NCBI GenBank assembly: GCA_964035545.1
Contig: OZ037770.1
Location: 4,868,662 to 4,932,661 of the forward strand
Reading direction: 5' to 3'
Source: Bugula neritina
Taxonomy: Eukaryota > Animalia > Bryozoa
Length of the DNA: 64,000 nucleotides
Made by a program: the position numbers and the translations under genes. This document shows, piece by piece, positions 1,445 through 27,229 of the stretch. Position 1 is the first letter of the stretch. Every line of letters begins with the position of its first letter. Below the pieces are notes generated by a model that ran no database searches, was not told the DNA's origin, and saw nothing but the letters and a program-made list of their open reading frames with translations.

Positions 1445-1865
1445 CTGCCATATAAAAAAAGATGATAGTATTACATGTAGGTTGTTTTTTTATGACAGTA
1501 CTTAGTACAAATGTAGCACTTTTTTTACCAAATATATACTTACAATTATACTGTTATATTATATATCTTTATAAAATAGTTAAAATGTTATGAATCATAT
1601 ATAATATGATACTCGTACATAATTGTAACTTAGACATACTTGTTTTCTTTCCTTAATTAATGTACTAATTCAAGGTATTGTATATAAACTTGTTATAGTA
1701 ACTGCAACTTAGTACTATATTATGTGTAATTATTGTTATACTAATATTGGGTATCTTTATGAAAACTATTATATCAATTACCTGTATAGCTAGGTCTAAT
1801 AATAGAAATCTTATATATTAATAGAATACAGAGATTAAAGAAGTTACAGAAACTCACAATTTCAG

Positions 1866-3827
1866 AGAATAACTTCACCAGTCTACCTTCTTCAGTGTGT
1901 GCATTGAGTAATCTGCACACATTGGATATAGGCAGCAACAGATCCATGACAGCCTTGAACCCTGAGATACTACAGCTAACACATCTTGAGTTCTTCTATA
2001 GAAATGGATGTGATGCTCTTACATCTCCTCCACTAGAAGTCTGTGAAAGAGGACTCGATGCTGTGCGACAATACTACACAGACTTGGCTAAAGGTGCAGG
2101 TAGAAACCTTCCATTTGCTACAATAGTGGTGTTGGGGAACACCATGGCAGGTAAAACCAGTCTAATCAGAACATTACAGAGCACTGACAAGAAGAGAGTT
2201 CTGACTGACAGAAGTCCTAATGCAGAGTATGATGAGACCACAAAAGTGTTCAATGTGGAAGAGGTGGAGGTAGATGGTACAACTCTTCGTCTCATAGATA
2301 TGGGAGGCCAGGAGGTCTACCATATCACGTACCATTTGACACTGAGACAGAATTGTGTACCAGTAGTTGTAGTCAACATGGAGCAGCATGATCAGATTTC
2401 AAATGAGTCTACAGATAAAGAGGCTGTAAGAAAGTTGGCCTTTGACTTCATGTCTCACCTCTATCTCGCTCATCCAACTCTTGGTCCGCCTAAGCTTGTC
2501 TTCACACACAAGGATAAGTTTCCGAGGGAAGTTTTCCAACAGCTTCGAAGAAATTTTCTTGAAGTGTCTGAGCAGTTTTGCAGAAATATTCTTGAAGAAG
2601 AGAAAAGTTTAGAAGGTGACTTTGCTCGAATTCAACATTTCACTGCATCAAACGGAAAAGTGTTCTCCAATGACAACATATATGAAGTTGGGAAATTTGA
2701 TGAGTACAAGATATTTGAATCAATTAAAAAATCTCTTCTTCAAAGTTGCCAACACTTTGTAAAGCCACTTCCGAAGGTCTGGGAGGATGTCAACAACAAC
2801 ATTTTGTCCTTACATGCTTCACATAACACCTTTGATGAAGTATTGGCTGTGATAAACGAGAAGCAGGATAACATTGAAGCAAAGCAGTTGGATACGATTA
2901 TCATGTACATGCATGATTGTGGCAAAGTTCTCTGGTATAAACATATTGATGCACTCAGGCCACACATATTTCACAAGATCACAGAAATAACCAAGCTACT
3001 CTGTGTCTTGTATCATCATGATTCGGACGTCTGGCAAAATAGAGTTGATCAGTTCAAACCATATTTTTCAATGGAAGGAGTGAGGATTGAAAAACAAGAA
3101 TTTGAAGAGTTTGTGAATTCCTTTAGAATCAATGGCTTGATGACAAAATCTCTTCTTGAATATTTGATCAGAAAAGAAACTTCGTTCACTGGTGATAATG
3201 ATGTCGGAATTGCTGTTTGCTTGCTCAGAACATTCCGTTTGTTGTATGGCCCTTTGAATAATGATTCTGAAGAGTCTTACTTCATAATCCCTCAGTTTGC
3301 CAAAGAAACTTACAGCCTCTCCTACACCCTACCAAAGGAGCTACTGCTTCATACTGAGACGCAGTTTAATGGTCTGGCATTGCCGCAGCATGTCTACCAT
3401 CAGATGACGGTTGGTTTGCTGGAACTTTTTGCTGACGATTCTGCTACAATAACGGTGAAGAAAAATGGAGCCAATGTCTATCAAGATAAAATGTACACAC
3501 AGCTGATACATGACTATGAATCTAGGAGAGTTTTACTCTACACGTCATCTGATGCAAGCATTATTACCAAAGCGTGGGAAAAACTCATTTCAGCCAACAA
3601 CAACATTCTCAGACATGTCATGGAAACTTGGACTGCTAGTCGTCCAGTTACTGCCTCCATCTGTGCTCACTGCTTACTGCTAGGTGCTCCGTGCCCTAAA
3701 AAGTCTATTCATCCTAAATGGTGTTTTCGCTCCTTGAAGAAGCCTTCACCGGTTGTCAAGAAGTGCAGCGGATCTTCAACAATCTTGTGCAATAGTGAGG
3801 AGATCCCAAGAGCTCTGATTTTCCCAT
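1866..3827 (+). CDS. Exon: last LRRs + Roc GTPase + COR domain
   Basis: LRR NNFTSLPSSVCALSNLHTLDIGSN; LRR-Roc linker LTSPPLEVCERGLDAVRQYY; P-loop GNTMAGKTS; G3 DMGGQEVY; G4 THKD; COR-type motifs LPKVW and YMHDCGKVLWY; CAHC near the end. Acceptor ttcag at 1861-1865, donor GTATGT at 3828. Confidence 0.93.
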
Positions 3828-6800
3828 GTATGTATCACTAATAGTGTTTATTACTATGTTTTTATAAATTGAAAACTTTGCCTACTACATAAATGATTTT
3901 CATTACTGCAAACTCTAAACAAAACCTGCTAAATTTTTTTAAATTTGAAAATATTCAAAGAAAAGCCATTATGTCTCGTGCAGTATTATTCTCGTAGTGG
4001 TTCTGCCGCAACTTATATTTTAGCCACCATATAAGTTGATTACAGTATATACATAATAATATGTGAGCTGCTCATAGTATATGTAGACTGGGTACATTAT
4101 ATGTAATATGTGAGCTGGTTGCAGTATATGTAGGCTGGACTGTTTTATTCAGGTGAGGCGTTGTCTGAGAAAGAAACCGATGAGCTCGTGAAGCTATTGA
4201 CTCAACTCAAACTTCGTAAACGACAGAATGATGCAATCAGAATTGGTATATCTCTATGATACTCACTTTATCAAAATCAGCGATCTATCAATGTAGAATT
4301 TTATTTACATTGAATAGAAATGTTTTTAAAATGTTTTTTTTTTGTCAAGCGATCAAGGAAATGGCAAATTTGCATTTCTTCTAATTTTCAAATCCTGGTA
4401 TTAGCCAGTCAAATCATGTGATTGCAGATGATGATGGTGATCTGAGTGATCTCTCTGATGATGATGACAATCTGTATCCTGATGAAGAGAATGAGGAAAA
4501 CGTGAAGTTTATCCAACCCAACCTAAAGACTACTAGAAACCTCAAGATTAAGAATCTCTTCTCAAATGCTGAAATGGTTGGTGTATTGGTTTAGGGTCAT
4601 AGTTCCCGCCATTTAATCATATTTTCACCTTATTCTTTGGATTCTCATGTTTGTATAACCTATACTTAGACAGAAAATTACAAACACGTGCATCTGTATC
4701 AAAATGACACTATTTACTGTTAGCTCTATTATTAGGCCATGTCTGCCTTAAACATGTTCAACTAGACGTACAAATATGTTAACTATTACTATCATTCATT
4801 ACAGTGTTTAGTATGCTATTCTAAGTCTATTTGTATCCAGGTGTTCAATATGACCAGAAAGAGAGGAAAAGCTCTAATAATAAACAACAAGAACTTTGTT
4901 GAAAGACCAGATTTATGCAGGGAAAGTTCAGATGCTGATGTTGAGAACATGTCTGTCATGTTGAAGTCTCTCAAGTTTGATGTTGAGACACACACAGACC
5001 TGACAGCAGAGGTATGATATTATTGTTGGACTGAAAGCAACTGTATTCAAGCGTAGTCTAGCGTTCAGTTTATCGAAATGAAACTTGACACTTGTTTTGT
5101 CAAACCTTAAAAATTGAAGCAATCATATATGTGACTATTATTTCAGTTTATCAATATCAAAAAATAAGGAGTGTATAGAAAACCCAAAGGATGTTTGCTG
5201 CTGGTCACAGTTTTCATAACTTTGTACCAATTATTAAACATATTTATTTTTAAAATTGCAGGAAATGTTGTCTGTCGTGAGGTCTGAGATAAGAAGAGAG
5301 AAAAACAATGGCCTGGGTTGTGAAATACTGGTTGTTATGACTCATGGTGGAGAAGATACCTGTATCTACGGAACTGACCTTGAGAAGGTCAACCTTACAG
5401 GCTTTTATGATTTGCTCGCTCCGTTGAGTCTGAAGCCTAAACCCACAGTTGTCATCCTAGAAGCTTGCAGTGGAGGTAATCACCCGTTAACTAAATAACA
5501 GTATTTGTCTCGTTTAGTGGAGTAGTTTCAGTAGCCAAAACATATCTTTGACTCAGCCATTAAAATTGAATTTATTGATTGTTTTCTCTTTATTTGAATT
5601 TTTTTATAAATCTCAATATTTCTGTTGCAGTAAAAATTGAGGTGAATCCAGACAGATCAGGTCTTGCAGCAGCTCAAGAAGAAGAAACTGAAGCTGTCCC
5701 TTCTACACATTCTGAATCTGATGATGATATTGTATATCCTGAAACACCCAGTGTAATAAGACCCATCAGACCTGACTTACCGCCAGCACCTAGAATAGAA
5801 GAGCGGTGGACCAGACTAGATGTTGATAATCTTCTTGTTCTAAAGAGTAACGTCTGCTGTAGGTGTATACTAAATAGTGATTGGCTAGTTTTACATGTGC
5901 ACAATCGCAGTTATTCAGGATGTTGTCTCTCCTTAATCCAATCTTTTAGACTTGTCTTTAAAAGAGGTATAACTAAACCAGTATATATTTTCCTAGAATG
6001 TTGTTTAGAGACATAAAAAAACTGCCTATGCACAACATACTTTGCATCTGTTTAGTATCTCGTAATTAGACATAAAACAAATCAAAGCCAATTATAAGGC
6101 AAAAGACCATAATACTGTACTATCATTGGATAGTTCTTCATCAATAAACAGGTAGTCGCCAGTGGTGGATATGAACCCCTCCTAGATGTTTCTCGTACTT
6201 CTTCCTCAAAAAACATTTTCATTAAGCCAAAAAGAAATAACAATACACCTTTTTAGTAGACACTTTTTAATTTCTGACTGATATTTCACCTTATTTCCAA
6301 TTATAATTAACTTTTAACCGCCACTTTTCTTTGTAGTAATTCCTACCCTTTAGACTGTGTACTTTGAAATGAGTCTGTTTTACTCGTTACATAAAGTATA
6401 GTTGCACTGGCTACAGGTTGACACAAAAGCAAGCCTATCTTGATAAAATCATGCGCAAATGTAGAAACTACCGAGGAGTTTGTTCCTCATAATTAGAAAT
6501 TGACAACTTATTTTTAATCCGTTTAAAAGCATCTGGTTAGGGAAGCATAATATGCCGTGTTCAATTTGTTATTCTAGCATTAACAATAACAGAATGCAAT
6601 AATTATAAGTTTATGAAAGTAATTTGTTTTCTTTCTAATTACAAATATAATATTTTAGTATATATTGTAAATTTATAAGGCTTGCATTAGGAATAACGCA
6701 GCTAAAACATCATTTTCCTTAAAGTCTTAAAAATATATAAGTATAACATAATACACTATGCCAATAAACTTATTAAAGTACCAAGCAAGCTTAGCTAGTT

Positions 6801-9800
6801 TAAGAAAAATTACACTAGGTAAATTCCCATTATTTATAGAATGCTTGCTGATATTAGCTTTTGATGTAATTAAAGTAAATTATTATTTATCTTTCTAGCT
6901 AAGGATTTCTTGCCCTAAGTTTTGCTTTTATGCATGGAGAAATGTCGTAACAAACGAGTTAAATTTTTATAGCACATAAAAATGTAATCTATAAGTCGAA
7001 GATATTTAAACTTAGCCATTAACTCATTTTAATTAGCAATGTAGCCTAAATCTAATACAATACAAAATATATACCAGTATATATAATATATTTTTACCAT
7101 GCTGTTAATTACAGTATTTGTAAAACAAATTTTATGCTCATTAATTAAATGCAACAAATATTTATAAAATACTAATAATGTTGAATAAATAAATTCAATA
7201 ATTCCTTTTCTATTTAAATGGCTGCATAATTTCTTGCAAGGTTGTATAAAGGAGTTGTGGCCTACAACTTATTATGTGTTCAATTGCCACATATGTCTTA
7301 GGAAGAAGAAAACTCCCCAAAAATTGTTGGTTTGAAAATTCTAGTATAATCAAAATCACTTAATATATGTCTTTGAAATGCATTTTGCCACTCTGCAAAA
7401 TTGCAGGAACAAATATTGCATGAAGTAATAAATGATTTATGAAGTAATTAACAAACCAATGTAAAAACTGTTGTTGTATATAGAACACAACATATTGATT
7501 TTCTTCAATTTCCACATCAAATCTATATATTCAATTATATCTAACCAATGCTAATAAACTAAACATGCATGCATACAAATATTTGCATCATATGCAAGTA
7601 ATATTAGCTAATTAGCAACTATAGCATTTTTGTCATTATCTTTATTGCTTGCATATGTCTAAGTATTATTAAAATAAGGTTTTTATTTGCAACTTTGCAC
7701 CACAAATTACATAAAATCTAAAAACTTGAGTTGTGACATGCATTAGGGCTACCTATACACAAATAGACCTTCATAAAACTCTCAATGATTTTATTCAACT
7801 CATGTATGCAAAAGTTTTGCATTAAAACAATTCTTCTAAATCACCCTAGAGCAGAAAATTATTACAAAAACAGCTTCTCATATATAATCTTTCTCCAGAT
7901 TAATTTTTTTCCTGTATTTAAACTAACTTAGCAAGTGAAGATTGTGATATCACTCAGGTAATCACATATATATTATTCATAGCTGTAATACTTTAGCAAT
8001 GAATAGATCATGTTTAATTTCCACTCTACCTAGCAGTTTTTCAGAATTATAGAGCTATGTATATCGTGAAATTGGAATAGCCTAATAGTTTTACATGTGT
8101 TTATAGCTAGACAAATTAACTTAAAAAGCTTACAATAATTAGATGATATTTGCATTCTTTTGAAGGTTATGGTGAAGCTACTGCAAAACTGGCCATTAGT
8201 TTAGCATAATATGCAATGCCACGCAAAAGCATGCCAAACAAGCAATGTTTATTTACCTTACCAGTGCAATTTTATCACCTTAAACACAAAAGCAAGTATA
8301 AAATACACATCCATATTAGATTAACTGTCAAGTTAAAAAAAGACAACATATATTCATGAGCTGGTTCTGTTTGCACAAGTACAATTTAGACCAGCTTATT
8401 ATTTAGATTGCCACAAAAATATGACGTAAAATATGTCTTTAATCATTATTTTGATATTCACTGGTTGAAGATATTTTTTATATCCTAATATGTAAATATT
8501 GTACATAAATCTTAAAAATTAACTAGGTGAATAAGGAAAACTGCTAATTTTATGAAACTGTTATGTTAATAAAGACAATGGCTATCAACAAATCCCACCA
8601 GACCACAAACTAATTGTAAATACTAAAGCAATTATATAGTGCTATGTGTTGATCTAGCCTAGTCAATACACCACAAATATGTATTATGACATACCACATT
8701 TTAAGTACTGGGTTACCATTTATTCTAATGGGTATTTGTTTAAACTGTTATATACAGCTTTTTGCACTACCAATATACAAGCCAGTTGTTATTCTGTCAC
8801 TTTTTATCTACATCTCTTTTTAATGCCAGTTACTTGTTAGCTTCAGTACAAACAGCTAAACATTCTACTCTACAGCCAATCTTACTGTTAACTCTTGTTT
8901 AACAATATTACAAGAATCTAAAAATTTGAGTGTGTTTTAAGTATAATATTCTATCATTATAACTTTTAAATGAAACAATAATATGATAAATGCATTATAA
9001 CTTTCTGAAAAGTTTTTTTGCAAAGTATATGTTTTTGGAAAATAGTTTTACAACATTTGCTAGGAGCGTTATATTTATTCCTATCTAAAATAATTTTGTT
9101 TGAACTGCTATGTTTGTAATCATGTAATCAGAAGTAAAGCATCAGTAAAATGAGTATAAGTAGAAGCTTGACAGCTACATTAGGCATTGCTACATAGTAC
9201 ATAAATATATGGCCGTATTAAATACTTAGCTGCATTCACAGATAAATGCATGGCTTGGAATTACAATACCATGAATACATTATTTATTTAGCTGGGTAAC
9301 TATACAATTATGCCAAAGTGAAAAGCTTTTGGTTATTAATGCCTGAAATGTCTAACAATCTACTTGGGAGACCACCTTGTTGTTACAGAGTGAATGAGTT
9401 ATTTGTTTGGCATTTGGATGATGGCACAAAGAAAGGCTATTTGGTTTGTTACTTGAGACTAGTAGCAAACTGCTACAGTCATAGCATCTTAGAAGATTTT
9501 GCATCACTTGCTAGAATTGTACATTATTTTAATGTAGCTATTGAAATTAATATCGCACTGAAAACACAGTATTGCAAAATCTTAAGCTGTACATAATTAT
9601 ATTATGCATCAAAAAGTACTTCTGCTATTCGACTATCCCAGGTTTATTTTAAACTAGCACTGCCAAAGTGCCTTGACTCTATTACAGTGTTTACTAGCTA
9701 ATTTTGTTCTTCTCAATAGTGAAATAGATCTATTGCAAGAAATTAATGACTAGATATAACAATAATGATTTTTAGGCAAGACTTACGCATCTATATTGCT

Positions 9801-12800
9801 CATCTGCTAGCTTGAAATACCCCTCTCCTTGGACTAATCTCGGGCTTTTCATTGTTGTTTAAACAGTTTTTAAACTCCTATTTCAATAAATCATTACCAA
9901 CACTGCCGGCATGTATTAATATTCATTAGTGCCATCAATGCACTGTGGAGACAGCACCTGATGTTCTGTATATTACATTATAGTACAGAGATACTAAATC
10001 CAAAACATCTAAAATAATTGATGCTTCTACCAGATTTTTAGCACACCTATAATATGTATTCCTGTAGTAAATATTAATAAGATGTTTTAACTGATAGTTT
10101 TTATGCCATTATAATAGTTTGATACTATAACTACAACTTGAAACTCTTTAACAGCACATTGGTTAGTAATATTGCTTCTTGATATTTAATTGCTGGTTCA
10201 CAAACTATCAATAATAGGGATGCATATCAAAACTTGACTGCATTCATAATATGATTTTAATGCTAGGTAATGACTAAGCGTGTCTGGCTGATATGAGGTG
10301 ACTATTTTGTACACTGTTTAACAACATCAGCTTTTTGGGTTCATTTAAAGCATCTGCAAATCTGTATTATACATAATTACTGTTAGGGCCAATTAATTAA
10401 ATTGTTAACCCTGAAATGCTTTTTACACTGTAATACTAAGTAGTAAAATACATGTATATATATATAAACTGATTGTAATTTATACATAACATTGTACATT
10501 TAAAAAAAATCACAAAATACATAATTTATTAGCTAAATTTCAAGGCGTTTTGTAGGTAGTGGGTTAATGTCAATAAAGTAGAATCCGGGAAGTTGAGTAG
10601 CTTTATTCAAGAGGAAGGCTCTCCAACAGTTCTACCAAAGCCTAAATAACATGTATAAAATAAAGGTTATATGCACAATTTTTTTTCCAAAACAGCCTGC
10701 AACTGTTTTGCTATTGCATATGCCCTATGCCATTCATCAAGTAGAACAATTTTAACCAGGATATCTAGAAAAGTTGACACAAGGGCTTTATAAACTATGT
10801 AACAGTAAAACTGTGAGTAGAAATTAATTGACACTAATGAATAATGCTTTAGGTGCTAGCAACAACCATAAAAGAAAAGTTATATGACAAACAAATAGAA
10901 AAAGCACTAAACAAATCAACAGCATTATATACAATTGGGGCACATACATGAAAACAGCAGCTAGTGTCATTTTCTTAAGACAGCACTATTTTAGGTATAA
11001 ATTTAAGAAGTATTAGAAAATGCAGAAATTTACTGCAATTGGTTCATTTTATTTAAGTTAGTACATACTGAAGATCTCAAGTTTTTGCTAATGAACATGA
11101 GTTTTGGCCCGAAACTAAAAAAATATCAATAAATACACCTAAATAATCAAGGCTCTTTTTAATTTTCTTTGATTTCCTATGCTTTTTTTCTAATTACAGC
11201 AACTTCTGACTGGGGATCGCCACGGTTAGTTTGTAACAGTAGGCAATCCAAATGAAATGAATAAATAGGAAAAAACATGAGAAATCATGCACAATTAAGA
11301 AGAACCTTGATTATTTAGGTGTATTTCTTGATGTCTCACTAATTTTAAGCAAAAAGCATTGTTCATTAGCAGCTAAAATGTAAAAATGGCTAAAAACTGC
11401 AGATTTCCAGTGTGTACTAAATTAAATAAAAGGACTCAATCACCTTTGCAACATAATTCAATAATTGCATGGTCAAGCAGAATAAACTACAATTAACAGC
11501 AACAACAGTGTAATAGTTGCGTAGAAAAGTTGTACTGCAAAAAACTAAAAGAATGCAAAATCTATAAATGTGTGCTACCAAGTAAATGCTGAACAGACAT
11601 CATGAAATAGTGTACGAAATACAAACTATTAAACTTACCTGTTGATCTAATGCAGCCAAAACCTTAAGCTTGGAGTAGTGGAATGGTGCTGTTCGATGTT
11701 GATATGCTACAAGTAGCTAAGATGACTCAAATTCTTGCCTTTAGGAGTAAGAGGCCTCAGCTCAGTTTCAACAAAACTTCCAATAATCTCAACGGATGCG
11801 CTCAATTAGGAGCCACAACAAAGCACACCCATGTCATTTTAGTAAACTCTAAAAAATGAACGGAAATAAAACTGTTAGAGAGTAAACAGAGAAACATATA
11901 GTGATGGGGGAAAAACCTGTCAGCAAAGGTTATATACACTCATAGCCGTAACACGAAGAAAAAGATAATGAATAACAACCTATTCAAGATGACACAAGAA
12001 ACCAAACAAATTTCTTTGACTAAAAAATATAATTAAATACTATATTACTTGGCAAAAAATATTTGTTTTGAACAACGTATTATTGGGAAGAATTGCCAGT
12101 GTCTTAAATTTTGAGATTAAAATTTCTGCCTTATAGCGGAAATAGAGAGGCAATCAATAGTGTACAAAACATGTTTTCAGTCATTGGCTGTTGACTAAAT
12201 TGACAAAGTTAAAGAAAGCTTCCATATCATTATTTATTTTGTTCTCAAGTGTGTGGTTACAGTTTCATGAGTCAGAAATATAATTATTTGAGTTATGAAA
12301 TCAAATGTAGTCAAAAGAGTGTCATACAATTTAAAATGTAGTAATAGAGCTTTGACAATAATTTCTTCTGCTAAGTAAAACAGGTACCATTATGTGCTAC
12401 TTATCTTTTAGAGATGAACATCAAGGATGTTGAAAACAAAATAGTTGTAAATTACAGCAAATACCTTTCTACTTACCTAACCAGAGAAAATAAGTTTTCA
12501 ACCTTGCATGCACTCAGCTGGTTTTCAATGTTTGGATCAGTGACATCTTTATAACTGATAGCAGCATTATGTGATAGCTTTAGGAATTGTTACCTTAAAT
12601 CTAAATTATATAGAACAAGAAGTGCAAAAATATGGCATTAGTACTCATTGCACAATACACACTTGCTAGAGTAGCTAATCTAGCATCACATTAATTTAAG
12701 AAAGACAAAATTTTATTACTGTTCACAAATGATGAATATTAAAATTTGAATAATTAGACAAATTAACAATGATATTGATGTTAGTTCAAACATTACTAAT

Positions 12801-15800
12801 GGTAAACACCAAAATACTAATAGGAATAGTCATGTTAACATCAATTAGAAAAGTAAAGATAATTTGAAAATGAGACAGTTTATAGGTCTAACGCTTATAG
12901 TTGACAAGCAATTACAGGGCAGTCATATTGATGTAGGCTACCCTCAAAATGTAGCACTTTAAAAATATTAAAAAGACAGCACATATAAGAACATAATCTT
13001 AAAAATAGGCATATGTGACACCTATATTTTGATTAACAAAGAAATCTTCTTTACTTTATTAATCTAGCTCATACAATGGTATTCTGTCTTAGTATGTTAT
13101 TTTAATACTTGAAATCTAATCAGCTACAGAAAAGTACTTCAATTCAAAGGCCTTCATAATTATTCTTTAGTTTGCTATTTAAATAGACAGTAAGGTTGAT
13201 GAATAAAATAAAAGTTAGTAAAGTAAAAACTAAATAAATTGAGAATAATATCTCCACTCTAAGGTTATAATCCTTATAAATTAACATTTTATTACTCCTG
13301 TTATCCTTAGGTATAGTTGTTAGCAATTTAACTATGAGCTCAAAGCCAAATGTCAGTATCAGCATCCCCATTACATTGACTAAGACTGACTTCATAACCC
13401 TCAAGCTGTGGCACTCAATTTCTATAAGTAGTAACTAATAACAAATATAAAATTATTTATTTGCTACTGATAGTGATAATAATAATAATTAAAAATAATA
13501 ATATGATCCATTAAAATAGAACTAATAAAGCCAACGACGTTAATGGTATGTCTAACTAAACATGGCATGTCTCGTCTGGCAGTGGGTATGTGGAGGGCCA
13601 GGCAACCTACGGCCGTCAACCCGTTAATGGCACAACTAAAAGAAGATACTCAAGAGAAGACAACAAAGTTGTCATGAAATGCTGCTTCAAAAGTACACCC
13701 AAATTGAGAGGTTATAGAAAAACAATGTATGAGCTCTGTAGACCCGGATCAAAGAATTATTTAAAAAGAATGTGCAAACGCTGGAAAACAGAGGAGAGTT
13801 TAACATCAGCGAATAGAGACTAGCGGATTAAGCAAGAACTATGAAGAAACACAAGCATTTTATGGAAGAAGAACTCCATAAGATTGAAGAAGGAACCTTG
13901 CAAGAACTAGGCACATCAATTGGTGAAGAAGATAATGAAGAGCTAAATTTGCAAATAGAGGATGTTATAGCACAACATGAGATAGCATATAAATCAGCCA
14001 TGAGAATTTTAAGAGTACCTAGTTCAGAGGTAGAAAAAGTGTTAGTAGAAAAATTATAAATGAGCATAACAAACTATCTAATGATCGACTAACACTAAGA
14101 GCCCTTAGGCACATTGAGAGGGTCAAATTACTACAGGCAGTAAAACAGATTAATGATGTGCTAAACTGTGTTGAGATTATTAATACCATTGAGCTTAATA
14201 ACACCACCATGGCTTGTGCGAAAAATAGTAACAGAACAAGTGTGTAACAAAAAGGAAAAAGAAAAACTGACAATGTACAAGTATGGAAAATACGACTGCA
14301 GAAGAAATAAAAAGAAATTAGATCAGACTTAAGTAAAATAGCAGAGTGAAAAAGTAGAGCTTACAATGATTCATTGAGAAGAATGGTTGAAGAAAAATAT
14401 AGGATAAAGAACAAAGAGTGTGGTGTAGTGATTGAAAAACTGAAGCAAAACCTGAGAGCTGTAAGCCAGAAGATAAACAGATATACAGAATGAGTTGATC
14501 AATATAATCAGAACACAATGTTTACAATGATAAGCGTTTTTATCAAGAATTACGAGGAAATGAATACGTACATCTAAAGAGGCACCTGACAAGGAAATCA
14601 AAAGCATTCTGATAAAATATATGGGGTCAGCCAACTAAAAATAATACCAATGCAGAATGACTAAATAAAGTTAGCAACAAATTGGAGCATATGTAAAGAC
14701 AAGGAAATTAGATCTTAGAAACGATGCAAACAACTGGAATAGCAATTAATGTCATAAGGTTGATAAGAAAAAGCATGAAACCTGGAAAACGCAACTGAAA
14801 TACCTGGAAGAAAAGATAGGAGAAATAAAGATTAAACTAAGAATTTTCCAAGGAGACTCTTTATCTCTATCCCTTTTCTCCAACTACCGATTCGCATGAC
14901 AGAAGCGGCTCAATGATGCAAATTTCGACGAGACAGAAAACAAACCATCTCCTATATGTGGATGACCTGAAGGTAAATAGGAAATCAAAGTGGGAACTGG
15001 AAGCTTTGGTAAACACTGCCGGGATCTTCACAAGGAATATAGAAATGAAATTTGGATTGAAAAATGTGCCACACTGGTTATGAGAAAAGGAAAGAAAATT
15101 AAGGACACAGGAATCAGTTTGCCTGATGAACAGGTAATCAAAGATCTGGGTGAGAAGCCGTATAAATATCTAGGAGTTCTTGAGATTGATGGAATACAAA
15201 TATATGAAATGAAAAATAAGATCAAGGAGTACTACAAACAAATAAGAAAAGTTCTGGATTCAAAACTGAATGGTGAGAACACAATCAAAGCAATAAACAC
15301 ATGGGCAGTAACAGCAGTGCATTACACAGCTAGAATACTTGACTGAACTGTTTCATGAGCTAAAAAATATAGACTGAAAGACAAGGAAGCTAATGACAAC
15401 AAACCGTGCACCCTATCCGAGAGCAGATGTAGGCAGGCTGTATTTTAGCAGAAGGGAAGGCGGTAGAAGAATGTTGTCAACTGAAAAATGCATAAAGATT
15501 GAAAACTGCAGCATGTCAGACTACATAAATATAACATAGACTGATAGAAACACCACACTGAATACCTTCCTAAAAGACAGAACAGCGGTAGAACTAAATA
15601 ATGATAAAGTGATAGAAAGAACTGATGAGTGTAAAGAAAAGCTTCACATGGTCAATACATCAAAATGGTGGAAGACATGAAAGCATTTTCCTGGAACTGG
15701 TTGAAGTATGGTTGGCTGAAAAAGGAAACAGAAGGACTGCTGACAGCTGCGCAAAATCAACTATTCACTACTAGAAATTATAAAGTGGCTATGATGAGAG

Positions 15801-17569
15801 AACAGGGTAGCAAGAAATGTGGAATGTGTAACGCAAGAGACAAAACTTCGATGCACGTATTGAGTGAGTTTGAGAAGGTAGCAGAAGGAGAATATAAGAA
15901 AAAACACAACCTTTTGGCATTGATAATTTCAATAGTAGTTGTGTGAACTTCGTGGGTTTCAGAAAAGTAAGAATTGGTACGGCCATCAAGCAGAATAAGT
16001 ACTGGAAAATGATAATGTGAAAACCTTGTAAGATTTTAACATACACACTGACGTAGTCATCAAAGTTAGGAGACCCGATATATTAGTAGTTGACAAGCAT
16101 AATGCTGAAACAACGATAATTGATATCACAGTCCCTGTTAACTACAGAGTAAAAGAAAAAAATTCGAAAAGTTAGGAAAATATCAGAATTTAGCACTAGA
16201 ATAAACCCGCCTTTGGAAAACATCAAAAAAGTCATCCCGTTGTAACTGGAGCCTTTGGAGCTTTATACAAGATTGTAGACTGGCTGACACTACTTGGAGT
16301 AGCTGAAAACAAATGCTCATTAATTCAGCAGACACCCTTACTAGGATCAGGATAAGCTCACATCCTGAGGAAAGTTCTAGCCATTTCAGCCTAGTATAAC
16401 TAGGCTAATGGTAAAAGGTTACACCAGCTAAAAAACTACGGTCAATCAACAATAATAATAATAATAGTGCAGTTGGTTCTATTATTAGATTAGCATATCG
16501 ATTATGACTTTTCGATTGCCACCCTGATACTATGAGTAAAATGTACAAGCATACGTGAAAGTATAGATATGATCATAAGTATAAAAATAGGTATAAGTAT
16601 AAATATAAATATAGGTACAAGTATAAAACGAATGATTATATTATTAATAATATTAGTCAGTGATACCTATAACCGTAATGGTTTTTAGACTTACAGTTAT
16701 CATTAACATTAGCTGAGTAATATGATTAGTTAAAATAATGGTATTATTATTATATCATAGTTATAAGTTATAACTCTAGTCTCTAAAGAGCAACAGCAAG
16801 TGTAATTGGGATATTCATATTAAATTTCATATTCACATAGTGAAATGTTTATGTTATGAACTAATTTATTCCTTCAACATTTAACTATAAAAATGATTAA
16901 CACTAACTTTGACCAGCAGTATTACTAAAAGAAGCGTATTACAAATATAAGATAATAAAATTCTAGTAGTAGGACTAATAGTATTACTAGGTCCAGTATT
17001 ATTCTTGTTATCTTATTCATCATTCATGAGTTATCAAATTTAAAATTACTACTTATTAGCATCAGCATATAAAAAGTAAGATCATTAGGAATAATTATCA
17101 TGAGGTATGATCTATGATTTGCATTGTCCATATATAGTTTAATATCAATATGATATATTATTATTGCTGATAGTCTATGTTATAGTTAAATTTATACTTA
17201 TCTTTACAGTTACCTATAGTAGCACTTATTAGTTATTTGTGGTAGCCAAACTAATGTTTAATATTAATAAATTAAACTGAGTATCATAAAAGTGTTACTA
17301 AGAATTTTAATTATAATCGTAATGGTGATCATATTACTTTATTATAATTATTATATTTTATCATTAATGCTAAACTGAGTTAATGTATATACTTTGAGTT
17401 TTACTATTACTCATTATATTTACACTTATAGTAAAACTAAATATGTAAAAGTTATACTGATACTATTATTATTCGTATTTCATTAGACTTACATCTAAGA
17501 TCGCAGTCCTATTACTACTACCACTGATACTAGTACTACAACTAGTACTAGTACTGCTACTAGTACTAG

Positions 17570-17601
<32 letters not shown>

Positions 17602-20600
17602 ATAGTACTGTTACTACTACTACTACTAGTACTACTACTAGGTCTACTACTGTACCAGTACAACTACAAACTTTGAAAATAACTGCAAGAAAGGTATGAC
17701 TTACTCTTTTTCTTAGTCTTACTGTGACTCTCAGTCGTAACGGTAATGTAAAATAAAATTGTGAACTGTAAAGTTAAACCCAAGGCTGAAATTTATTTAA
17801 TTAAATTTAGACAATCTGAATCATTGGCTCAATCCTTGAGTTTGACTATTACTATTATTATTAGTGTTACTATTGTGATTATCATTGGCATTATGCCATT
17901 ATGATTATCATTATGATTGTAATTGTGGTAATTCTAACATTAACTATAATCATAAATTAAAAGGTAATGATTAATGATAATTATTTTCATTTTGTAACCA
18001 TAATGATAATCATAATGATGTAAATTTTGATGTAAAACCAAAATACTAAAACTAAAAGTAAAAGTTATAAAATTAAATGATAAAATATTATAATGATAAT
18101 TATTATATTTATTATATTATTATTGAATATATTATTTCATTAGAAAATAGGTTGCAGCTTAGCATGATTAAAATTCAGTAAAAATTAGTTTACCAACAGC
18201 AAACATGCATGCGTCTTGTCAACATTCAATTCGTAGTGTCATAGCGAAGCCAGATTACTGGTAGTACGACTACTAGAACTACTACTACTAGTGATGGATT
18301 ACAGATCCTTGGCGATTTTAGCTGTGAGTGACCTTCACCTCACATTCTCGTCATGTGCGCGGCATTAGACTAAGTAGAGGGTGTGAAGCACTGAGCTGGA
18401 AAAGAAAGAATATATTTTAATTATAGGTAATACTAATAGTAATATAATTTATGGTAATATATAGGTAATATTATTGAGTTCATTGGTATGGAGTATAGAC
18501 CTATCACTGATAGTATCAGTATCAACTACCACTTACGTACTACTTCAACTTATAACTTACCTTCAACTCAAACTCAAACTGAAACTGCTTGGAATCATTT
18601 GTCTTTGATCATATTGGCATTGTCATTGTGATTGTAATAACTATTAATATTTTTAGTTCAACATCAATGCCGAACATATTGTAACAACTAATAAGATAAT
18701 CATAAGGTTGATATATTTTGCTAATACTAATACTAATAGTTATAGTAATAGTTATACTTATAGTAATTCAGTGTCACTCTCACTCTGGTGGAGTGAGACT
18801 CAGACTTAGAGTTAGAGACAGAGTGAGTCCGAGTAAGTCTGAGTGTTGGTAATAGTAATAGTCATATAAATTTAAATTATATTTACTTATTTCTAGCAAT
18901 CACAATGGCAATAGTTATAGTAACTTTCACTTACTCTTAAATCATTGAACCTGAACTGAAAGTAAAATTAAGCATTATCATTATGATTATCATTATGATT
19001 ATACCTATGATTTTATTATGTTTAAATTAAAAATCAATATCATGATAATATCATAGTGATAGACATATTATTGATAAATGATAATATAAAAGTAATTTGA
19101 TAAATTATACATTTATTTTGAATTAAGGTGATACTGATGCTAGACCGGTACTGAAAGTGATAGTAATACTAATAGTAATAGTAATAGTCATATAAATTTA
19201 AGTTATATTTACTCATTACCGGCAATCACAATGGCAATAGTAACTTAAACTGTAACAGTAATGGTATGGGTATGTTTGAAATTGTCACTATCAGTATTGC
19301 TATGAATCAAAATATAATGCTATCATACCAATAATTTAAAATAATATTACAAAGCTTCAGTAGCAACTTTTACTTGTACCAGTTTGGAATTTTGAATTAT
19401 ACATATTCTTAGTTAAAGTCTTCAAGTTTATTGTCAAAATGAACTTGAAATTAAAGACTTAGTAGTAAAAATTAAACTAAGACTGACTGTAAGTGACTAA
19501 GATTAAAAATAAGTAATTTTAAATATCGATTTAGTATTTTTCTTACTCTTTGTCTTAAAATTGACTTTTATTTTGCACCTACTCCTGGTCAATGATTCTT
19601 TTTTCTATTTATATTACTATTGCTATTAGTATAATTGACTTAAATTTAATAATAGATATGATTATATCTTTATAAATGTGATATTTGATTTTATGAATAG
19701 TAATTCGAAAACTCTTTGGTATTATTTATTTTTGATCATTGTAGTTATTATCATTATATTTGTATAATAATTATGATTATCAAATTCAATATCGATATTT
19801 GTATTATGGTATGGATATCTGCCTCCATCCCATGTTCTGTTTTGCAGTGCCTTTTTACATTCACGTCTAGGTTCACATTGCGATGGTCATACTGATAGCA
19901 CTTGGGGACAGTGATGAGCATAATGATTATCACTAATATTAGGATTATCGTTATTAGGATTTAGAATAATTTAATAAACAAGCAACTTAAAACAAATGTT
20001 TTTACTAATATACATATTAATTACTAATATAAATATACTACTATGAATATTATAATTATTATACTTTACAATTCAAAGTAAGATAATCATAATACGAACT
20101 GGTAAAACTAAATATAAAGTAAATGTAATAATACTAATAGTAGTTATCCATTCCCCTTTGGTTTCACATACTAATAATTGGAAACCTCTGTCCTAATATT
20201 ATTTCTATTAATATTGCTCAAAATTTGATCCCTATTTAATTTTATAGTTCACTCACCAGCTACATAATTTTATTAAAATACATGTGGTATTGGTTATAGT
20301 ACTAGTGAAACTTGAAGTTGAATAGCATGCTTATTACTCACTGCTCTTTGCTTACATTATTAGGGTTACTCTTTAGTCTTAGAGATACCCTAACATAAAC
20401 TTGAAAGCTGGAGGTAGTACTAGTCTAGTGCTGTGTTAATCCTACACTGTTGACTTATCAACACTGTGACTATAATTATGACTCCTAAGTCAAAGTCATT
20501 TTCATATAGTAGTAATCACTATGACAGACTGAAAGTCAGGAAGACTAAATATAATGGTAAAGTGTGTAAGAATAAATCATACTTAATCAATTACTTTTAG

Positions 20601-23600
20601 TTTTGTTACCAGTGTTGGGTCAACTTTCAGAATAAAGAATAAATATAATTATAAAGATAAATGGATAAAAATTCCAATCATGGTTTAATGTGCCTATTTT
20701 AAGCTGTTAATTTAATTACTATAAGTGCTCAAAATACAACTTTTGATTTTCATAATTATGTTTTAATTTAATACAGATACCATAGTATCATATACAGTAG
20801 AATCAGTTGTATCTTATTTAATAATGAAGTAACTTATTGGAGCTTTCACAGTTATTAATTATTTACTTGTTAGTCTTTGAACTAGGACAATGTTTGAAAC
20901 TTGAAGTAGAATGAAGTTTGATTTCAGTTACCGCAATGGTATCTGCAGTCACAATAGGAATACGCATATAACTATGTTTATATTTGTGAAAAATATATAG
21001 TCAAAACTAGATAAGGTAATAGTAATTATAATTGGTTTCACTTTTAATATATTCCTATAAACTGGAAAATAGACAGAAGCATTTAATCATGAAAGTAAAC
21101 CTAGTGGAAGTAAATCAATTCACTAAGTATAGTAAAATATTTACTATTCAGTAAGTTTATTTACTTTAGTTAATTGTACTTGATTATTTCTGTCGGTTTT
21201 TCAGTTGATTTTTTTACCTTTTGCTATAGCATATCAAACTACCACAAAGTCATGCTTCCGTATTACAATTATAAACATAGTGTTACTGTGTAATGTTATA
21301 GTAATGCAATAGTAATATTTGGATCATTGTAAGTATTTCTGTTGTTGTACTGATTGATAAATATTTTTTAGCTTGCATGGATATTTGCAACGATCAAGAT
21401 GTCATTTGAACCTGGACTGGAATAAAGATGGCAAATCGAGAAGCTAGCTACAATTATTCTGCAGAAAGAAACTTGGTAAGCAAAAATAAGCTGCAGCAGT
21501 AAGCAATATGACGATGAACTTTGCTTGATTTTGATTGACCTTAAAATATCTGGTCACCTTTCACCAACGTGGTCCTGCGCGGGTGGCGGGTGACCTTAAA
21601 ATGTCTGTTGCACGTAAAATAAATTTTGTGACAGTCAAAAGTATGCTGATCTTTTTCGTATTTCAGTGCATCAGTGTCTTAGCTTAAGAGCTGAACCCAA
21701 CAATTATGATCTAAAGCTGTTTTTTACTAGAAAGTGATTTTACTGTCTTTCTGATTATTCTTGGTTTTTCAGCTTGATGAATTGAATAAATGGATTTGAG
21801 TTCGGGTATTATGTAATGGATGAAAGAAATTTTTCTTAAATTTGTACTGAGCAATTTTTGCTATTGCTATGATGTTTAGTGATAAAATTGCACCCTTAAT
21901 AACCCTGAAAACTTTCATTACTAGCATTTGTTTATGTTCATTTTTAGGAAATTAAAATGAAGACACAACTCACCGATGCTATCTCACTGTGCCTGCATGC
22001 AGTTTATCTAAAAAGGTACTCCTATTAGCTGGCTCTTGCCCAATACCTGGTTGTCTCTGTAACTATTTTTTGCTCGCAGATGAGTTTTTTGAACTTGACA
22101 TTTTATTGATTTTGAAAGTTATAGTGAGCTTTGAACTTGCTAGCATCGTTTTTAAAGACTTGCTGCAGTTTTTATCAACATTTTTTCAGTCAATGGTGTT
22201 AGTTTGGAAGCTCTCTCACTCCTCTCTCTGTCTCTTTCTCCCACACCTTCCACTCAACCTCTCTCTCTTTCTCCCCCTCTCTCCCACCCTCCCTCTCTCC
22301 CACCCTCCCTCTCTCCCACCCTCTGTCTCTCCCACCTTCTCTCTCTCCCACTCTCCGTCTCTCCCACCTTCTCTCTCTCCTAACCTTTCTCTCTTCCCTT
22401 TTCCACTATCTCTCTGACTCTCTCCCTTTCTCTCTTCTACCCCATCTCTCTTCCATCCTCTCTCCTAACCTTTCTCTCCCACCCCCCCTCTCCCACTCTC
22501 TTTCTCTCTCTAGTTTGCATGGCTTTACCCAATTTTGGTTTATTTTTTTATTTTGTTTCAGAGTATCCAAAAGGAAAGCTAAAATTTATTTAATATATAT
22601 TATACAAACTTGAGCTTTACATATAATATCAAATAAATGCTGTGTTTTGTTAAAACAATGTTTGCAACTTTGTAGTATATTCAAATTCATAAATTATTTG
22701 TAGAGTCACACAACAAGACACTACTCTGACACACTCACAAGTTGCCACTGATCCAGCAGTATAGATGATTGTTTTCTCCACTGGCTATGCTGTCACGCTT
22801 TACTGTTGTGGTGTTTGAAACAAACCAATTGTTTGCCTACGCAGATTAGGGTGAGAAAAAAAGTGAGAAATGAAAGCTGTTTTTAATACCAACTACACTT
22901 AGTTTTTATTGAATGAAAAACAAAGTGAAATCATTAGTTATCCGTTAAATGACTAAATCATTGTTTATAAAGATGAAACACAAATAATCTTATAATATGC
23001 TAATGAAATTTGGCTTTCAAATAGCTTTTTTCTGTATATTTGTTGAGGAAGTTTATCTTCAACAAAACTTCGTAGCTGTTGAATATGTGGAGAGTGTTTT
23101 ATATTGCATAAATTTATAGAGTAAAAGGTTCTCATCAAACTTTTACAACTTAGCTCATCTACGGTTTAAAAGTGTGAGTCACCCTTCACACTAGAGTTTT
23201 ATAAAGTTTTAATGAATGTGCAGTATTTTATAAAATATTGTGTGTCTCGTAAATTTAGCTATTTCTACCTTTTCAGTGAGATTGGAGTAAACACACCTCA
23301 AAATTCACATCTGGTATCACATTGATTTATCGCAAGTCAAAGTACACCTACTAACTCTTCCTTCCTTAATACCTGCTTGATTTTGCACTTCTACTCATTT
23401 CATATACCTAACATTTCTCTTGCAGATGAATTACATCTTTTAAGTTGTAAAAGCCTTAAATAGCATGAAATTAATGAGGTTTAAACCGTGGCCACACTAA
23501 CTATTGATGCGTTTATTGATGGGTTAAATTACACGAAAATATTGTCTCTTTCTTTTTAGTTTCACCTAAAGTATTACATACTATTGATGGAGGCTTTGCT

Positions 23601-26600
23601 GAAGTTTTTGGGTGATGATTTGTCAATAATTTTCCAGAGAAGATGATGCCACGGTGGCTGGCATCATTATGCAGTTTCCAAATTTCTTTCGGCTTTGCTC
23701 TAGTGAAAATGTTGGAAAACAATCAACAAAAAGGTTTGTACCATAAACGAAGTTATTGTGTGCGTGTTGTCAAAGCATAAAGTGTGCTGGAAATTTTTGG
23801 GTTTCTGTTGAGATGCGTTTTTGCTTTTCCTGCATGAAAAAAGTTCCAGTTTCAGTTAATATCACTAGCGGAGTGCCCACCTATATTTTAAATCATATTG
23901 ATGCATAAGTTCTTTTTGTAATATTAAAAGTATAACTTGCTTAATTGCTATTCAATGCCCTTTGAAGTTTCCAACTGTAATTAATTAGTTGATTTGGCAG
24001 CATAGTATCGATGATTGATGAAGGCAGCCGATATAATTATAAGCATAAATATCTATATCTACATGAAGATGTCATTCCCAATGATTGTTATTCTGAAATC
24101 AGCTGATTAAGTTATCACAAACTAAACATTTTGACCAGCGGCTTGCAATGCAACTCGGTGAAATTTCAGACCTAGATAAATTGAATTTCTTACTGAAAAT
24201 CGTGAAGGTATTAAAGTTTAAAGTGAAAGTTTAAAGGGTCATCTCTCTGCGAATTCTAATAGCATGGTGCCAATTAGACTTGAAAAAATTTCAAGGCACT
24301 ACAAAGCACTAAGCCCATTCTTACAAGTAGTTTCAAAGTGCACTGGAATTTCAGTTTACTTGTCATTGTATAGAATCCTGATCTACACTATATAGCATTC
24401 ACTATTGCCTGCTTCTTCTAAGCATCTATAATGTATTCACTACAGTTTGCTTTGAGAAGTGAATTTCTACTTGGTATTTTTTCCTTATCGTTCTGTTGTT
24501 TGCCAGTAGTCTTAATTTAATGGATTTTCCCTTTTCAAAAGTGGTTGTGACAATCAAAACACATCATGCAGCCTGCAACTACACAATCAGTCAGTAATTT
24601 CTTCCATTAAAGTAGCTCTTCTGGTTACTCTTGCTCACCTAAAAGCCTGAGCCTCATTCAAATTGCAATTTTTTAGAGTTGTTAGTTTTTCATGCAGTCT
24701 TTCATTTTTTTTTTGTTAGGCACAAAATTAGTATTCACTAGACCTAATCTTTCATCTGCATGTATGCCTATTGTTTGTTCATTAAAAAAAAACCTCTGCT
24801 GAGTATTGAACTAATAATGAAAATAAATTCCCTAAACTAAAAGTAGCAGTGTGATTTTGGTATTACAATTAGTTGTTAGCATAGAGTCAAGTTATTGACA
24901 GGAATTTTCAAATTGAAATGAATGAATTTCATTGTAAGTCAGCAAGATTTAGTCTAAGTAAACATAGCATTACATCGTGTTTTATTTAGCATTTGCAGAA
25001 GGCAACATATATTTTAAGGATTATTGTAAATTTAAATGTAATTTTAAGTACTTTCCATGTTTGTTATTGTAGATGGTCTTGTTCTTTGGGATGGATGTGA
25101 CAACTCCTTGTGTCAAGCTTAACTGATTGACTACTGAATCCCAATCATATGTTTTGCCAAAAAATGTGAAAATGGAGTGCATGTCTACTTTATTTGAGAA
25201 AATATTAAAAATACTTTTGAAACTTCATCTAGCCAAACAATACAACAGTTTCATTTCATTAAAAAATATCATTTGCACAAAAATGTATTATGTAATCAAA
25301 CAATTTCTAGAAAAAAAGTGCTTTCCTCCAGTTTTGCTAATGAACTACATTTTTCATTATATGCTTGTCTTTATAATTTTATTAATTGTTTTTTCTGGTG
25401 AGTCAATTAAAGTCAATTCAACTTAATTTCAAGCTAAAATATTCACATTTTTAGGTCTGCGTTTGCAAACATTGTTGTGTTACTTTACTTTTTATATTTT
25501 TTGAAATAAATATCTTTTTAGCTTGTGCCTATTCATGATTAGAATAGTATAATAATATTTAACTTTTCTTCAATTTCAATAGATGAAAATGTTGATCAGT
25601 TGGAGTATTCAGTTTAGCTGAATTTTACTTGCTTCTGCGAAAACAATCTTTTGGAGTTGTCTGCCCTCTCTAGGTAATTTTTTGACCTATGGTCAACGCA
25701 ATAATTATAACTTTTTAAAGATGCTTGTGAACCTAACAATATAGCATAACTATCAAACCACATTATTCAATATCTGCATAAAATTTAGCCGATAAGCTGC
25801 CACCCAATGAGCTTGAAAAGATATTAGAATTCTAGCTCAGTGCTGCCATCAATGTAGATATTTATAATGATATAAAGCCAAAACTCATTATTTATAATGA
25901 TATAAAGCCAAAACTCATTATTTATAATGATATAAAGCCAAAACTCAATATTGCATGAAATTATCTAACCATTCCTGACAAAGAATCGAGATAATAACTC
26001 CAAAGTTGGTCAGTTGAAACCACAGCAATAATACTTTAATCCTTATAATTGTCAGGTTTAATTTTATACCAAGCACCAATAAGTATATATCACTATGACA
26101 ACACAGCCTAAGCACCTCCAATGCAAAAAATTTAGTATTGTGGTGCTGCAAATCCTCCAGTTACAAATGAGTAGAGCTTTCATGATTATTGGTCTACCAT
26201 GATGTTTATTTAGTTTTAAGGACTAGCATAAATGCTATTATATGTGGGAGGTATTTGAAAAGCTTCCAACTCCATCTTCAACTACGGGCTATTATAATTA
26301 TGCCGATAAACGAGATACTACACTCAGACTGCCCTGTTATAGTACTATGATTGGCTACTGCAAAATTTTTGCCGATAGACAACATTTAATTATGATGTAA
26401 TGTATCTCGTATTGGTACATAAGTGTTATGTCTGAGGACGAGATACTGTGAAATTATGCCCTGAACTAAACACTGCTCAGAATTTTAAAATATACTGAGC
26501 TTGCTCTGAATACATTATGCATTTGGCTGCATTCAATCTTATTATAGCATCAAAGAGACATCCTGAGTATGGATCTCCTATGATTAGAGCTCTAGTATCT

Positions 26601-27229
26601 TCAATCTACAAACATGCCTGTCACCGTGATCTCTACACCATCTTTCAGCAAGTGAGTGAAGAACTAAAGTATTTTTTGCCATTTTAACGTTTATACAAGA
26701 AAGTATTACTAATTGTAGCATCTCCTTCATTGTCACGTTCAAAGAAAGAAAAGATTTGGTCCTTTCTTAGTATAAGAGAATGCCATTCAGCGCTTTCCTT
26801 GTTTGAATCGTGGAGTTTAGTCTGTGTTTTTACAGTTTCTTTAGAGTACTGGCTCAGTACTATATATTGATAGTTTCTCTCCTTTTTTAATATGTTCTTG
26901 TAGTCTGCTAATAACTAGTCCACTTTATCAAATGACATTACTGTAGCGGACAACTCCAAAGGTTTTACTACTCCGATGCATTAATGTAGGATAAAATATT
27001 CTAACAGCTGGGAGTTGTACCTTATTACTTTTAGTAGTGAATTGATGAACAATCTTACTAGTCATTACTTACTCTACAGGTACAGACTAAATTAGTGAAG
27101 AAACTGTATCCAGATGAAGATTCAGAAAGGAGCAGAAATTTGGTTGTAATCTGGAAGACTCTTCCTCCCCGTAAAAGACTTTACCTGTTTCCTGGCTTTG
27201 ATGGGTTGAGTATAGAGGACAACTCCTAA
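1866..27229 (+). CDS. LRR-Roc-COR-caspase fusion protein (ROCO GTPase with C-terminal caspase/peptidase C14 domain); 8 exons in window, 5' end missing
   Basis: Exons 1866-3827, 4153-4245, 4428-4576, 4841-5011, 5262-5475, 5631-5858 (or 5864), 26548-26651 and 27080-27229 all have GT-AG borders and compatible phases. They sum to 3071 nt (2 nt plus 1023 codons including TAA) with no internal stop. Roc and caspase motifs appear in the correct order. Confidence 0.88.
4153..4245 (+). CDS. Exon: post-COR helical linker
   Basis: ttcag|GT GAG GCG... reads (C)EALSEKETDELVKLLTQLKLRKRQNDAIRI; phase 1 at both ends; donor GTATA at 4246. Confidence 0.8.
4428..4576 (+). CDS. Exon: acidic linker preceding the caspase domain
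   Basis: ttgcag|AT GAT GAT... reads DDDGDLSDLSDDDDNLYPDEENEENVKFIQPNLKTTRNLKIKNLFSNAEM; donor GTTGGT at 4577. Confidence 0.8.
4841..5011 (+). CDS. Exon: start of caspase large (p20) subunit
   Basis: VFNMTRKRGKALIINNKNFVERPDLCRESSDADVENMSVMLKSLKFDVETHTDLTAE matches the caspase pattern M..xRGxALIINNxxF...R....D.......L.F.V....DLT. Confidence 0.92.
5262..5475 (+). CDS. Exon: caspase catalytic core
   Basis: EMLSVVRSE...ILVVMTHGGEDTCIYGTD...KPKPTVVILEACSG contains the His motif THG (canonical SHG) and the Cys motif EACSG (canonical QACRG). Confidence 0.92.
5631..5858 (+). CDS. Exon: inter-subunit linker and start of caspase small (p10) subunit
   Basis: VKIEVNPDRSG...SESDDDIVYPETP...DVDNLLVLKSNVC corresponds to the DxLxxxST strand. 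The phase-1 donor is either GTAGGT at 5859 or GTATAC at 5865. Confidence 0.8.
11036..11440. repeat. Degenerate foldback/MITE-like inverted repeat inside the giant element (also at about 36653-37055)
   Basis: AAATACACCTAAATAATCAAGG (about 11131) is inverted as CCTTGATTATTTAGGTGTATTT (about 11305); GCTAATGAACA/TGTTCATTAGC and TTAGTACA/TGTACTAA are outer arm matches. Confidence 0.7.
13500..16465 (+). mobile_element. Degenerate non-LTR retrotransposon with restriction-like endonuclease (R4/Dong-like), copy 1
   Basis: Frameshifted motifs IFQGDSLS, HLLYVDDLK, KCA, YKYLG, KAINTWAV, GGR, ETEGLLTAAQ, CxxC..H, DFNIHTD..RPDI...IIDI..P, KYQNLA. (AAT)n tail at 16451-16465 and (AAT)n upstream at about 13475-13503. 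Part of the RT is deleted. Confidence 0.85.
16470..21360. repeat. Long cryptic triplet-periodic (A-N-T) low-complexity tract including (ACT/AGT)n at 17510-17670
   Basis: Runs such as act act acc act gat act agt act and att act att att att agt gtt act att recur over several kb; no long ORF. Confidence 0.65.
22210..22512. repeat. CT-rich polypyrimidine/polypurine tract (also 48163-48468)
   Basis: About 300 bp of CTCTCCCACCCTC-like units. Confidence 0.9.
25858..25947. repeat. 30-bp tandem repeat x3 (x2 in copy 2 at about 51816-51878)
   Basis: Unit TATTTATAATGATATAAAGCCAAAACTCAT. Confidence 0.9.
26548..26651 (+). CDS. Exon: caspase small subunit (SWR/GSxFI-equivalent region)
   Basis: attatag|CA TCA AAG AGA... 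reads SSKRHPEYGSPMIRALVSSIYKHACHRDLYTIFQQ; donor GTGAGT at 26652. Confidence 0.85.
27080..27229 (+). CDS. Last exon: caspase C-terminus
   Basis: ctacag|VQTKLVKKLYPDEDSERSRNLVVIWKTLPPRKRLYLFPGFDGLSIEDNS*. TL...LYLFPG is a typical caspase terminal strand. Confidence 0.88.
   Translation, partial: VQTKLVKKLYPDEDSERSRNLVVIWKTLPPRKRLYLFPGFDGLSIEDNS

Follow-up and report, generated by a model that had tools for sequence, protein, structure and literature searches.

Our analysis has shown that a gene of the bryozoan Bugula neritina joins leucine-rich repeats (LRRs) and a Roc-COR GTPase core to a caspase in one spliced chain, and that this fusion is real and is expressed at the level of its gene family. 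The gene lies in a 64,000-nucleotide stretch of contig OZ037770.1 (assembly GCA_964035545.1, positions 4,868,662 to 4,932,661, forward strand), here called the window, and coordinates are those of the window unless a contig is named. A first-pass annotation made from the sequence had proposed a ROCO-to-caspase fusion through eight GT-AG exons, and this proposal was borne out. The chain 1866-3827/4153-4245/4428-4576/4841-5011/5262-5475/5631-5858/26548-26652/27081-27229 has GT-AG boundaries throughout and runs for 1022 stop-free codons. Pfam Peptidase_C14 matches fall in exons 4841, 5262 and 26548 in profile order (1-49, 50-128 and 173-205), and RNA joints support the chain at family level. Domain and database searches were run exon by exon, and the exons were joined for the frame check alone.

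The RNA data consisted of contigs from four public runs of four studies; the RNA type is presumed, and near-zero intron depth agrees with it. Most of these contigs are 90-99% alike to the locus and none spans the whole stretch, so they establish the fusion one joint at a time for the family as a whole, rather than on one molecule from this allele. The joint 3827>4153 was found in two runs, 4245>4428 and ~4576>4841 in three runs each, and 5475>5631 in all four. Loose contig ends bridge 5011/5262, and those at 5858 (runs X3 and X9) are the first 30 letters of the 26548 exon. Thus two of the junctions singled out by the first-pass annotation (3827/4153 and 4576/4841) were recovered as joints, and the third (5858/26548) as matching loose ends at family level. 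The same annotation had named transcripts ending after 3841 as evidence against a fusion; the short read-through stop at 3841 proved to be intronic, the RNA being joined from 3827 to 4153. That joint, and the presence of downstream caspase exons at every Roc-COR locus, rule out a separate caspase gene. A gene-prediction or assembly artefact is likewise ruled out by the RNA joints, the 92 colinear loci and the occurrence of the fusion in other species.

The exon boundaries first proposed stood in part (Table 1). RNA uses donor 5858, and we rejected the alternative at 5864, which would give the canonical loop length; other individuals carry a 2-nt deletion at 5862. Acceptor 1866 was also rejected, because it is private to this copy and not conserved in paralogues, and RNA covers 1857; the large exon starts at 1825 (phase 2) or 1832. 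No LRR exons were found in window positions 1-1800, and the model is incomplete at its 5' end, with at least 13 two-LRR exons 7-16 kb upstream of the window (150 of 687 candidates scored). The upstream array at C6:4853001-4861676 consists of near-identical 46-codon exons at ~570-bp spacing. Based on these exons, the full protein probably comprises ~1,650 aa or more, with at least 29 LRRs, Roc, COR, an acidic linker and the caspase. The intron before the Roc exon contains two degenerate tandem copies of ~185 bp, 75% identical, at 1076-1445.

Table 1. Features of the LRR-Roc-COR-caspase gene and its long intron (window coordinates)
Feature	Position	Strand	Remarks
Large exon	1825..3827	+	last three LRRs, Roc GTPase, COR-A, COR-B, Cys-rich tail with invariant CxHC
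Linker exon	4153..4245	+	helical in Watersipora model; RNA joint 3827>4153
Acidic linker exon	4428..4576	+	29% D/E; candidate self-cleavage sites; leads into caspase
Caspase p20 exon 1	4841..5011	+	carries S1 arginine; Pfam PF00656 E 8e-10
Caspase p20 exon 2	5262..5475	+	catalytic His (THG) and Cys (EACSG); Pfam E 5e-5
Inter-subunit linker (acidic, ESDD) and first p10 strand	5631..5858	+	
Caspase p10 exon	26548..26652	+	S1 arginine, GSxxI-type motif
Last exon	27081..27229	+	final caspase strand (LYLFPG) and stop
AATAAA-type signals	27720 and 27918		3' of last exon
Dispersed mobile element in intron 6	5979..26463	.	20,485 bp; exact 8-bp target duplication 5971-5978 = 26464-26471

The domain assignments of the first-pass annotation also held in Pfam. 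Roc (above cut-off in the large exon, E 2e-7) and Peptidase_C14 were clear, the LRR match was weak, and COR-A, weak and below cut-off (E 8e-5), was backed by structure. Modelled with AlphaFold (pLDDT 92.6), the large exon had as its best Protein Data Bank matches LRRK1, C. tepidum Roco, isolated RocCOR and COR structures, and LRRK2. Because these are Roco and COR structures, the identity of COR is secure despite its weak Pfam score. The GTPase motifs of this copy are G1 GNTMAGKT, G3 DMGG and G4 THKD, which are kept in 27-28 of 28 paralogues, and COR directly follows Roc, as expected of a Roco protein. Among the window exons, Pfam and the structure matches identify the NTPase as Roc and not as a STAND (NACHT/NB-ARC) type. 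At the end of COR-B (3660-3672), an invariant CxHC and further conserved Cys near the exon end are common to amphioxus; this is possibly a zinc site between COR and the effector.

The caspase fold, with p20 and p10, was recognised by Pfam exon by exon, and the model of a Watersipora homologue matched caspase-3/6/7/8 (TM 0.80-0.86 by target). The dyad His (THG) and Cys (ACSG) are present, as are both S1 arginines (exons 4841 and 26548), which were placed through the caspase-3 alignment of the homologue. The pentapeptide is EACSG rather than QACxG. Fifteen copies, including this one, carry EACSG and nine carry QACSG, with more QACSG copies using other Ser codons; HACSG, EVCSG and QACAG also occur, and Watersipora has QACSG. 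Every readable paralogue retains His and Cys. Compared with the Watersipora proteins, this copy has a loop shorter by two residues ahead of the p10 arginine. Asp-specific protease activity of this copy appears likely. The window exons of this copy, which do not include its extreme N-terminus, and the full-length Watersipora models alike gave no Pfam match to a CARD, DED or Death domain.

The search for paralogues and for the taxonomic range that the first-pass annotation had suggested was productive: it returned a large Bugula family, Watersipora proteins and 12 proteins of Branchiostoma. At least 92 distinct Roc exons were counted in the 216-Mb B. neritina genome (68 + 9 + 6 + 9 in successive searches), clustered on contigs C6 and C1 in a large tandem expansion. 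A catalytic caspase exon follows 91 of the 92 on the same strand within 16 kb (coordinates matched by hand), and the remaining one has a downstream p10 exon. Positions alone were obtained for the upstream LRR exons and for most of the caspase exons of paralogues. A few Roc exons carry stops, as in birth-and-death families. LRR exon arrays like that of this copy precede the paralogues (687 candidates genome-wide), and such repeated arrays would allow copy-number change and exon shuffling.

Sequence variation among the paralogues is concentrated in the LRRs. The ratio of nonsynonymous to synonymous differences (pN/pS), estimated from pairwise counts in 11 disjoint paralogue pairs with the LRR register set by the repeat consensus, was 1.37 at 12 concave-face LRR codons, 0.55 at other LRR codons and 0.21 in Roc-COR (concave face versus Roc-COR, Fisher p 1e-16). 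By these counts, the LRR face is strongly relaxed or diversifying, which is not proof of positive selection. Taken together, the tandem expansion and the variable LRR face support an immune-receptor-like signature.

Among annotated relatives, the nearest are RefSeq proteins of Watersipora subatra (XP_067932893, XP_067947674, XP_067948342 and others), which have LRR, Roc-COR and caspase in one chain and are labelled 'MFHAS1 homolog'. The conserved exons of the window are colinear with these proteins, and a full-length Watersipora model matches both Roco proteins and caspases. Another bryozoan-labelled European Nucleotide Archive (ENA) contig has Roc and then caspase exons. In ENA ERZ20067936 (L036 4001-6784, 34% GC), an open frame of 927 aa that encodes Roc and the beginning of a caspase possibly represents another lineage with the fusion. 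In Branchiostoma, the 12 retrieved proteins have the LRR-Roc-COR-caspase order and the pentapeptide QACRG, and close paralogues have a different C-terminal domain (GT4 glycosyltransferase, OTU or Death), in some cases combined (P0255, P0256, P0259-P0277). The Lingula relatives among the matches listed had no caspase match. In Roc-COR trees, which were built without vertebrate MFHAS1/LRRK and have long branches, the bryozoan cores form their own long-branch clade and the amphioxus caspase-fused cores interleave with cores bearing other effectors. A single clade of caspase-fused cores was rejected under LG+G4 (approximately unbiased test, p-AU 1.5e-48). We infer from the trees either an independent fusion in bryozoans and amphioxus, or effector swapping in amphioxus.

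With regard to novelty, the architecture has been glimpsed before in silico, in amphioxus and in bacteria, and what is new in the bryozoan is its scale and variability. Zhang et al. (2008) described amphioxus 'LRRs-caspase' hybrids and suggested that pathogen recognition could be coupled directly to apoptosis; the consulted portion of that article has no mention of Roc-COR and no test (PMC2575513). By our analysis the B. floridae protein C3XQ16 is an LRR-Roc-COR-caspase in the same order as the bryozoan protein; the model ids in that portion of the article were not matched to it. The amphioxus Roc-COR is ~22% identical to the Bugula copy, and amphioxus caspases have QACRG where this copy has EACSG. 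Kaur et al. (2021) predicted bacterial LRR-AP-GTPase-COR-effector counter-invader proteins with caspase among at least 24 effectors (PMC8195603). Like the bryozoan protein, these have rapidly evolving LRRs, a Roc-COR core and a C-terminal effector, but they are predicted only, with up to 11 paralogues and varied effectors, whereas the bryozoan has at least 92 spliced genes and a fixed p20/p10 caspase. The interchangeable tails on one type of core in amphioxus resemble the effector swapping predicted in bacteria (PMC8195603). In Aplysia, Roco-TIR fusions have been reported (PMC9334734). The word caspase is absent from a Roco review (PMC6337361), and we found no functional study of an LRR-Roc-COR-caspase, and no bryozoan description, in the literature searched, which did not extend to subscription journals. 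The first-pass annotation had likewise known of no functional study; the domain order itself has precedents in amphioxus (PMC2575513, as far as consulted) and bacteria (PMC8195603).

MFHAS1/MASL1 and LRRK1/2, like C. tepidum Roco, have the LRR-Roc-COR fold in common with the bryozoan protein; they lack a caspase, LRRK has a kinase at that position, and they are single-copy in vertebrates. The NLR inflammasome and the Apaf-1 apoptosome share its working logic of a repeat sensor, an NTPase switch and a caspase engaged by proximity, and NLRs likewise show lineage-specific expansion with a variable LRR face. In contrast to these, the bryozoan protein has a Ras-like Roc instead of a STAND ATPase, an N-terminal LRR, a covalently attached caspase and no death-fold adaptor.

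Considering its parts together, we lean, by a modest degree, towards a single-chain cytosolic sensor-protease in which ligand-gated COR dimerisation would activate the caspase. The LRR face would bind a variable non-self or damage ligand, and binding would shift the Roc nucleotide state and the COR monomer-dimer equilibrium. By analogy with C. tepidum Roco (CtRoco), a resting GTP-bound monomer would become a dimer after hydrolysis or release, and the dimer would join two tethered caspase domains for induced-proximity activation like that of initiator caspases. Self-cleavage in the acidic linkers would then set off cell death or inflammatory processing with no need of CARD/DED adaptors. We favour a monomer that carries GTP at rest and dimerises once hydrolysis or release has occurred, because it best fits caspase induced proximity. 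The proposal draws support from the size of the family with caspase exons after every Roc exon, the variable LRR face set against a conserved Roc-COR, the retained G1/G3/G4 motifs, the RNA joints, the colinear Watersipora proteins, the interchangeable tails of amphioxus cores (as predicted in bacteria) and the lack of CARD, DED or Death matches in the exons and proteins examined. The pentapeptide without Arg resembles those of caspase-8/9, which also counts for a sensor-protease of this kind.

Several points weigh against this proposal. CtRoco is a monomer with GTP and a dimer when nucleotide-free, COR-B being the dimer surface (PMC6337361, PMC11052575). Because GTP monomerises CtRoco, activation may run opposite to the simple model. 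The caspase follows a flexible linker (pLDDT <50 in the Watersipora model), and a coupling to COR geometry is not evident. The change from Gln to Glu in the S1 pocket and the loop shortened by two residues may alter or weaken activity. The concave-face pN/pS is not significantly greater than 1 (p 0.13; 12 codons), and ligand, dimer and protease activity are all predicted. Of the adaptor-free immune module suggested by the first-pass annotation, then, the architecture, the intact motifs and the receptor-like signature stand, while the direction of dimerisation (on the CtRoco precedent) is uncertain and the S1 pocket is atypical.

The strongest rival, which we consider unlikely but well worth attention, reverses the direction: Roc-COR and LRR would hold the caspase inactive, and GTP-driven opening or cleavage of the linker would free it to dimerise. 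Cleavage could come from a pathogen or upstream protease acting at the acidic linker, and Asp-rich disordered linkers do lie on both sides of p20. The GTP-bound form of CtRoco is the open, monomeric, 'active' one (PMC11052575), and among solved caspases it is effector caspase-3 that comes nearest in sequence. On the other hand, the pentapeptide lacks the effector-type Arg, and the receptor logic is that of the dimerisation model, with the direction alone differing.

The 20.7-kb distance to the last two exons, which the first-pass annotation had pointed out, is real for this copy but is not a feature of the gene: it is a ~200-nt intron with one 20.5-kb transposon insertion. In most paralogues the p10 exon lies within about 0.5-2 kb of the catalytic exon, the long gap being peculiar to this copy. 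We assigned the 26548 exon to this gene because no other p10 exon occurs ahead of the next paralogue; splicing across the element in this allele is unproven. This raises the less probable alternative, compatible with any of the other models, that this copy is a crippled allele in which the insertion blocks splicing to p10 and yields a truncated, inactive product, the paralogues being functional. The element is young (copies 94-100% identical) and its left end occurs in RNA contigs, and the RNA junction at 5858 may stem from a paralogue whose p10 exon is identical (C6:4496797) or from insertion-free alleles. Against a crippled allele, the intron donor, last 84 nt and acceptor are intact and all exons are stop-free.

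We give little credence to a third possibility, that many members, including this copy, are decoy, pseudo- or altered-specificity caspases (cFLIP-like regulators or non-Asp proteases); the pentapeptide does vary among paralogues and paralogue L033 has Ile at the p10 S1 Arg, but both dyad residues persist in all readable paralogues and this copy has both S1 arginines. Bryozoans are colonial, recycle their polypides and host symbionts, and variable LRRs with copy-number expansion would also suit allorecognition, yet a role in self/non-self colony recognition, symbiont control or programmed polypide turnover instead of pathogen sensing seems equally improbable, as the parts seen have no signal peptide or membrane evidence and solitary amphioxus and bacteria share the design.

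Returning to the sensor-protease, it is a tentative proposition, which we hold to be nearly as probable as its opposite, that a Roco GTPase rather than a STAND ATPase forms the core of a large, diversified intracellular receptor repertoire of ~100 genes in bryozoans, with modular LRR arrays and with a caspase of its own in each receptor, the S1 pockets being varied: an adaptor-free 'Roco inflammasome' that would have arisen separately from the amphioxus and bacterial versions. If true, proteolysis would report directly on the monomer-dimer switch of Roc-COR, which is disputed and which governs LRRK2. The long-standing question of the signalling nucleotide state of Roc-COR would become directly testable, because caspases report dimerisation by self-cleavage. 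It would also mean that animals build intracellular sensors on a third NTPase chassis in addition to NACHT and NB-ARC, here in at least 92 genes mislabelled 'MFHAS1 homolog' in databases. The pairing of the same core with a caspase in bacteria, amphioxus and bryozoans suggests a convergent receptor design, and the scale and variability of the family are likely to surprise specialists.

The intronic element itself is AT-rich, young and dispersed, and occurs in some 40 copies or more. Sequences from its left end, its interior and its right end each recur at 37-39 other places at 94-100% identity, and every one of the four runs has RNA contigs that include the left end. It ends in CAG...CTG with a weak, imperfect terminal inverted repeat and is hAT-like, yet very large; hAT transposase PF05699, the single domain sought, had no match within it. 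The element carries a decayed stretch like a long interspersed nuclear element (LINE) at about 13.5-16.4 kb. A second, truncated copy lies at 35252-52391 of the window and accounts for a 16.8-kb window duplication that had been considered as a gene duplication. Only this second copy contains, at 42389-42733, a 340-bp insertion like a miniature inverted-repeat transposable element, which has terminal inverted repeats of 71 bp and an overlap of 9 bp. Decayed fragments of LINE type, with a weak endonuclease match, were also seen 3' of the gene at 28192-30306, and the GC-richer stretch at window positions 1-510 is probably another repeat.

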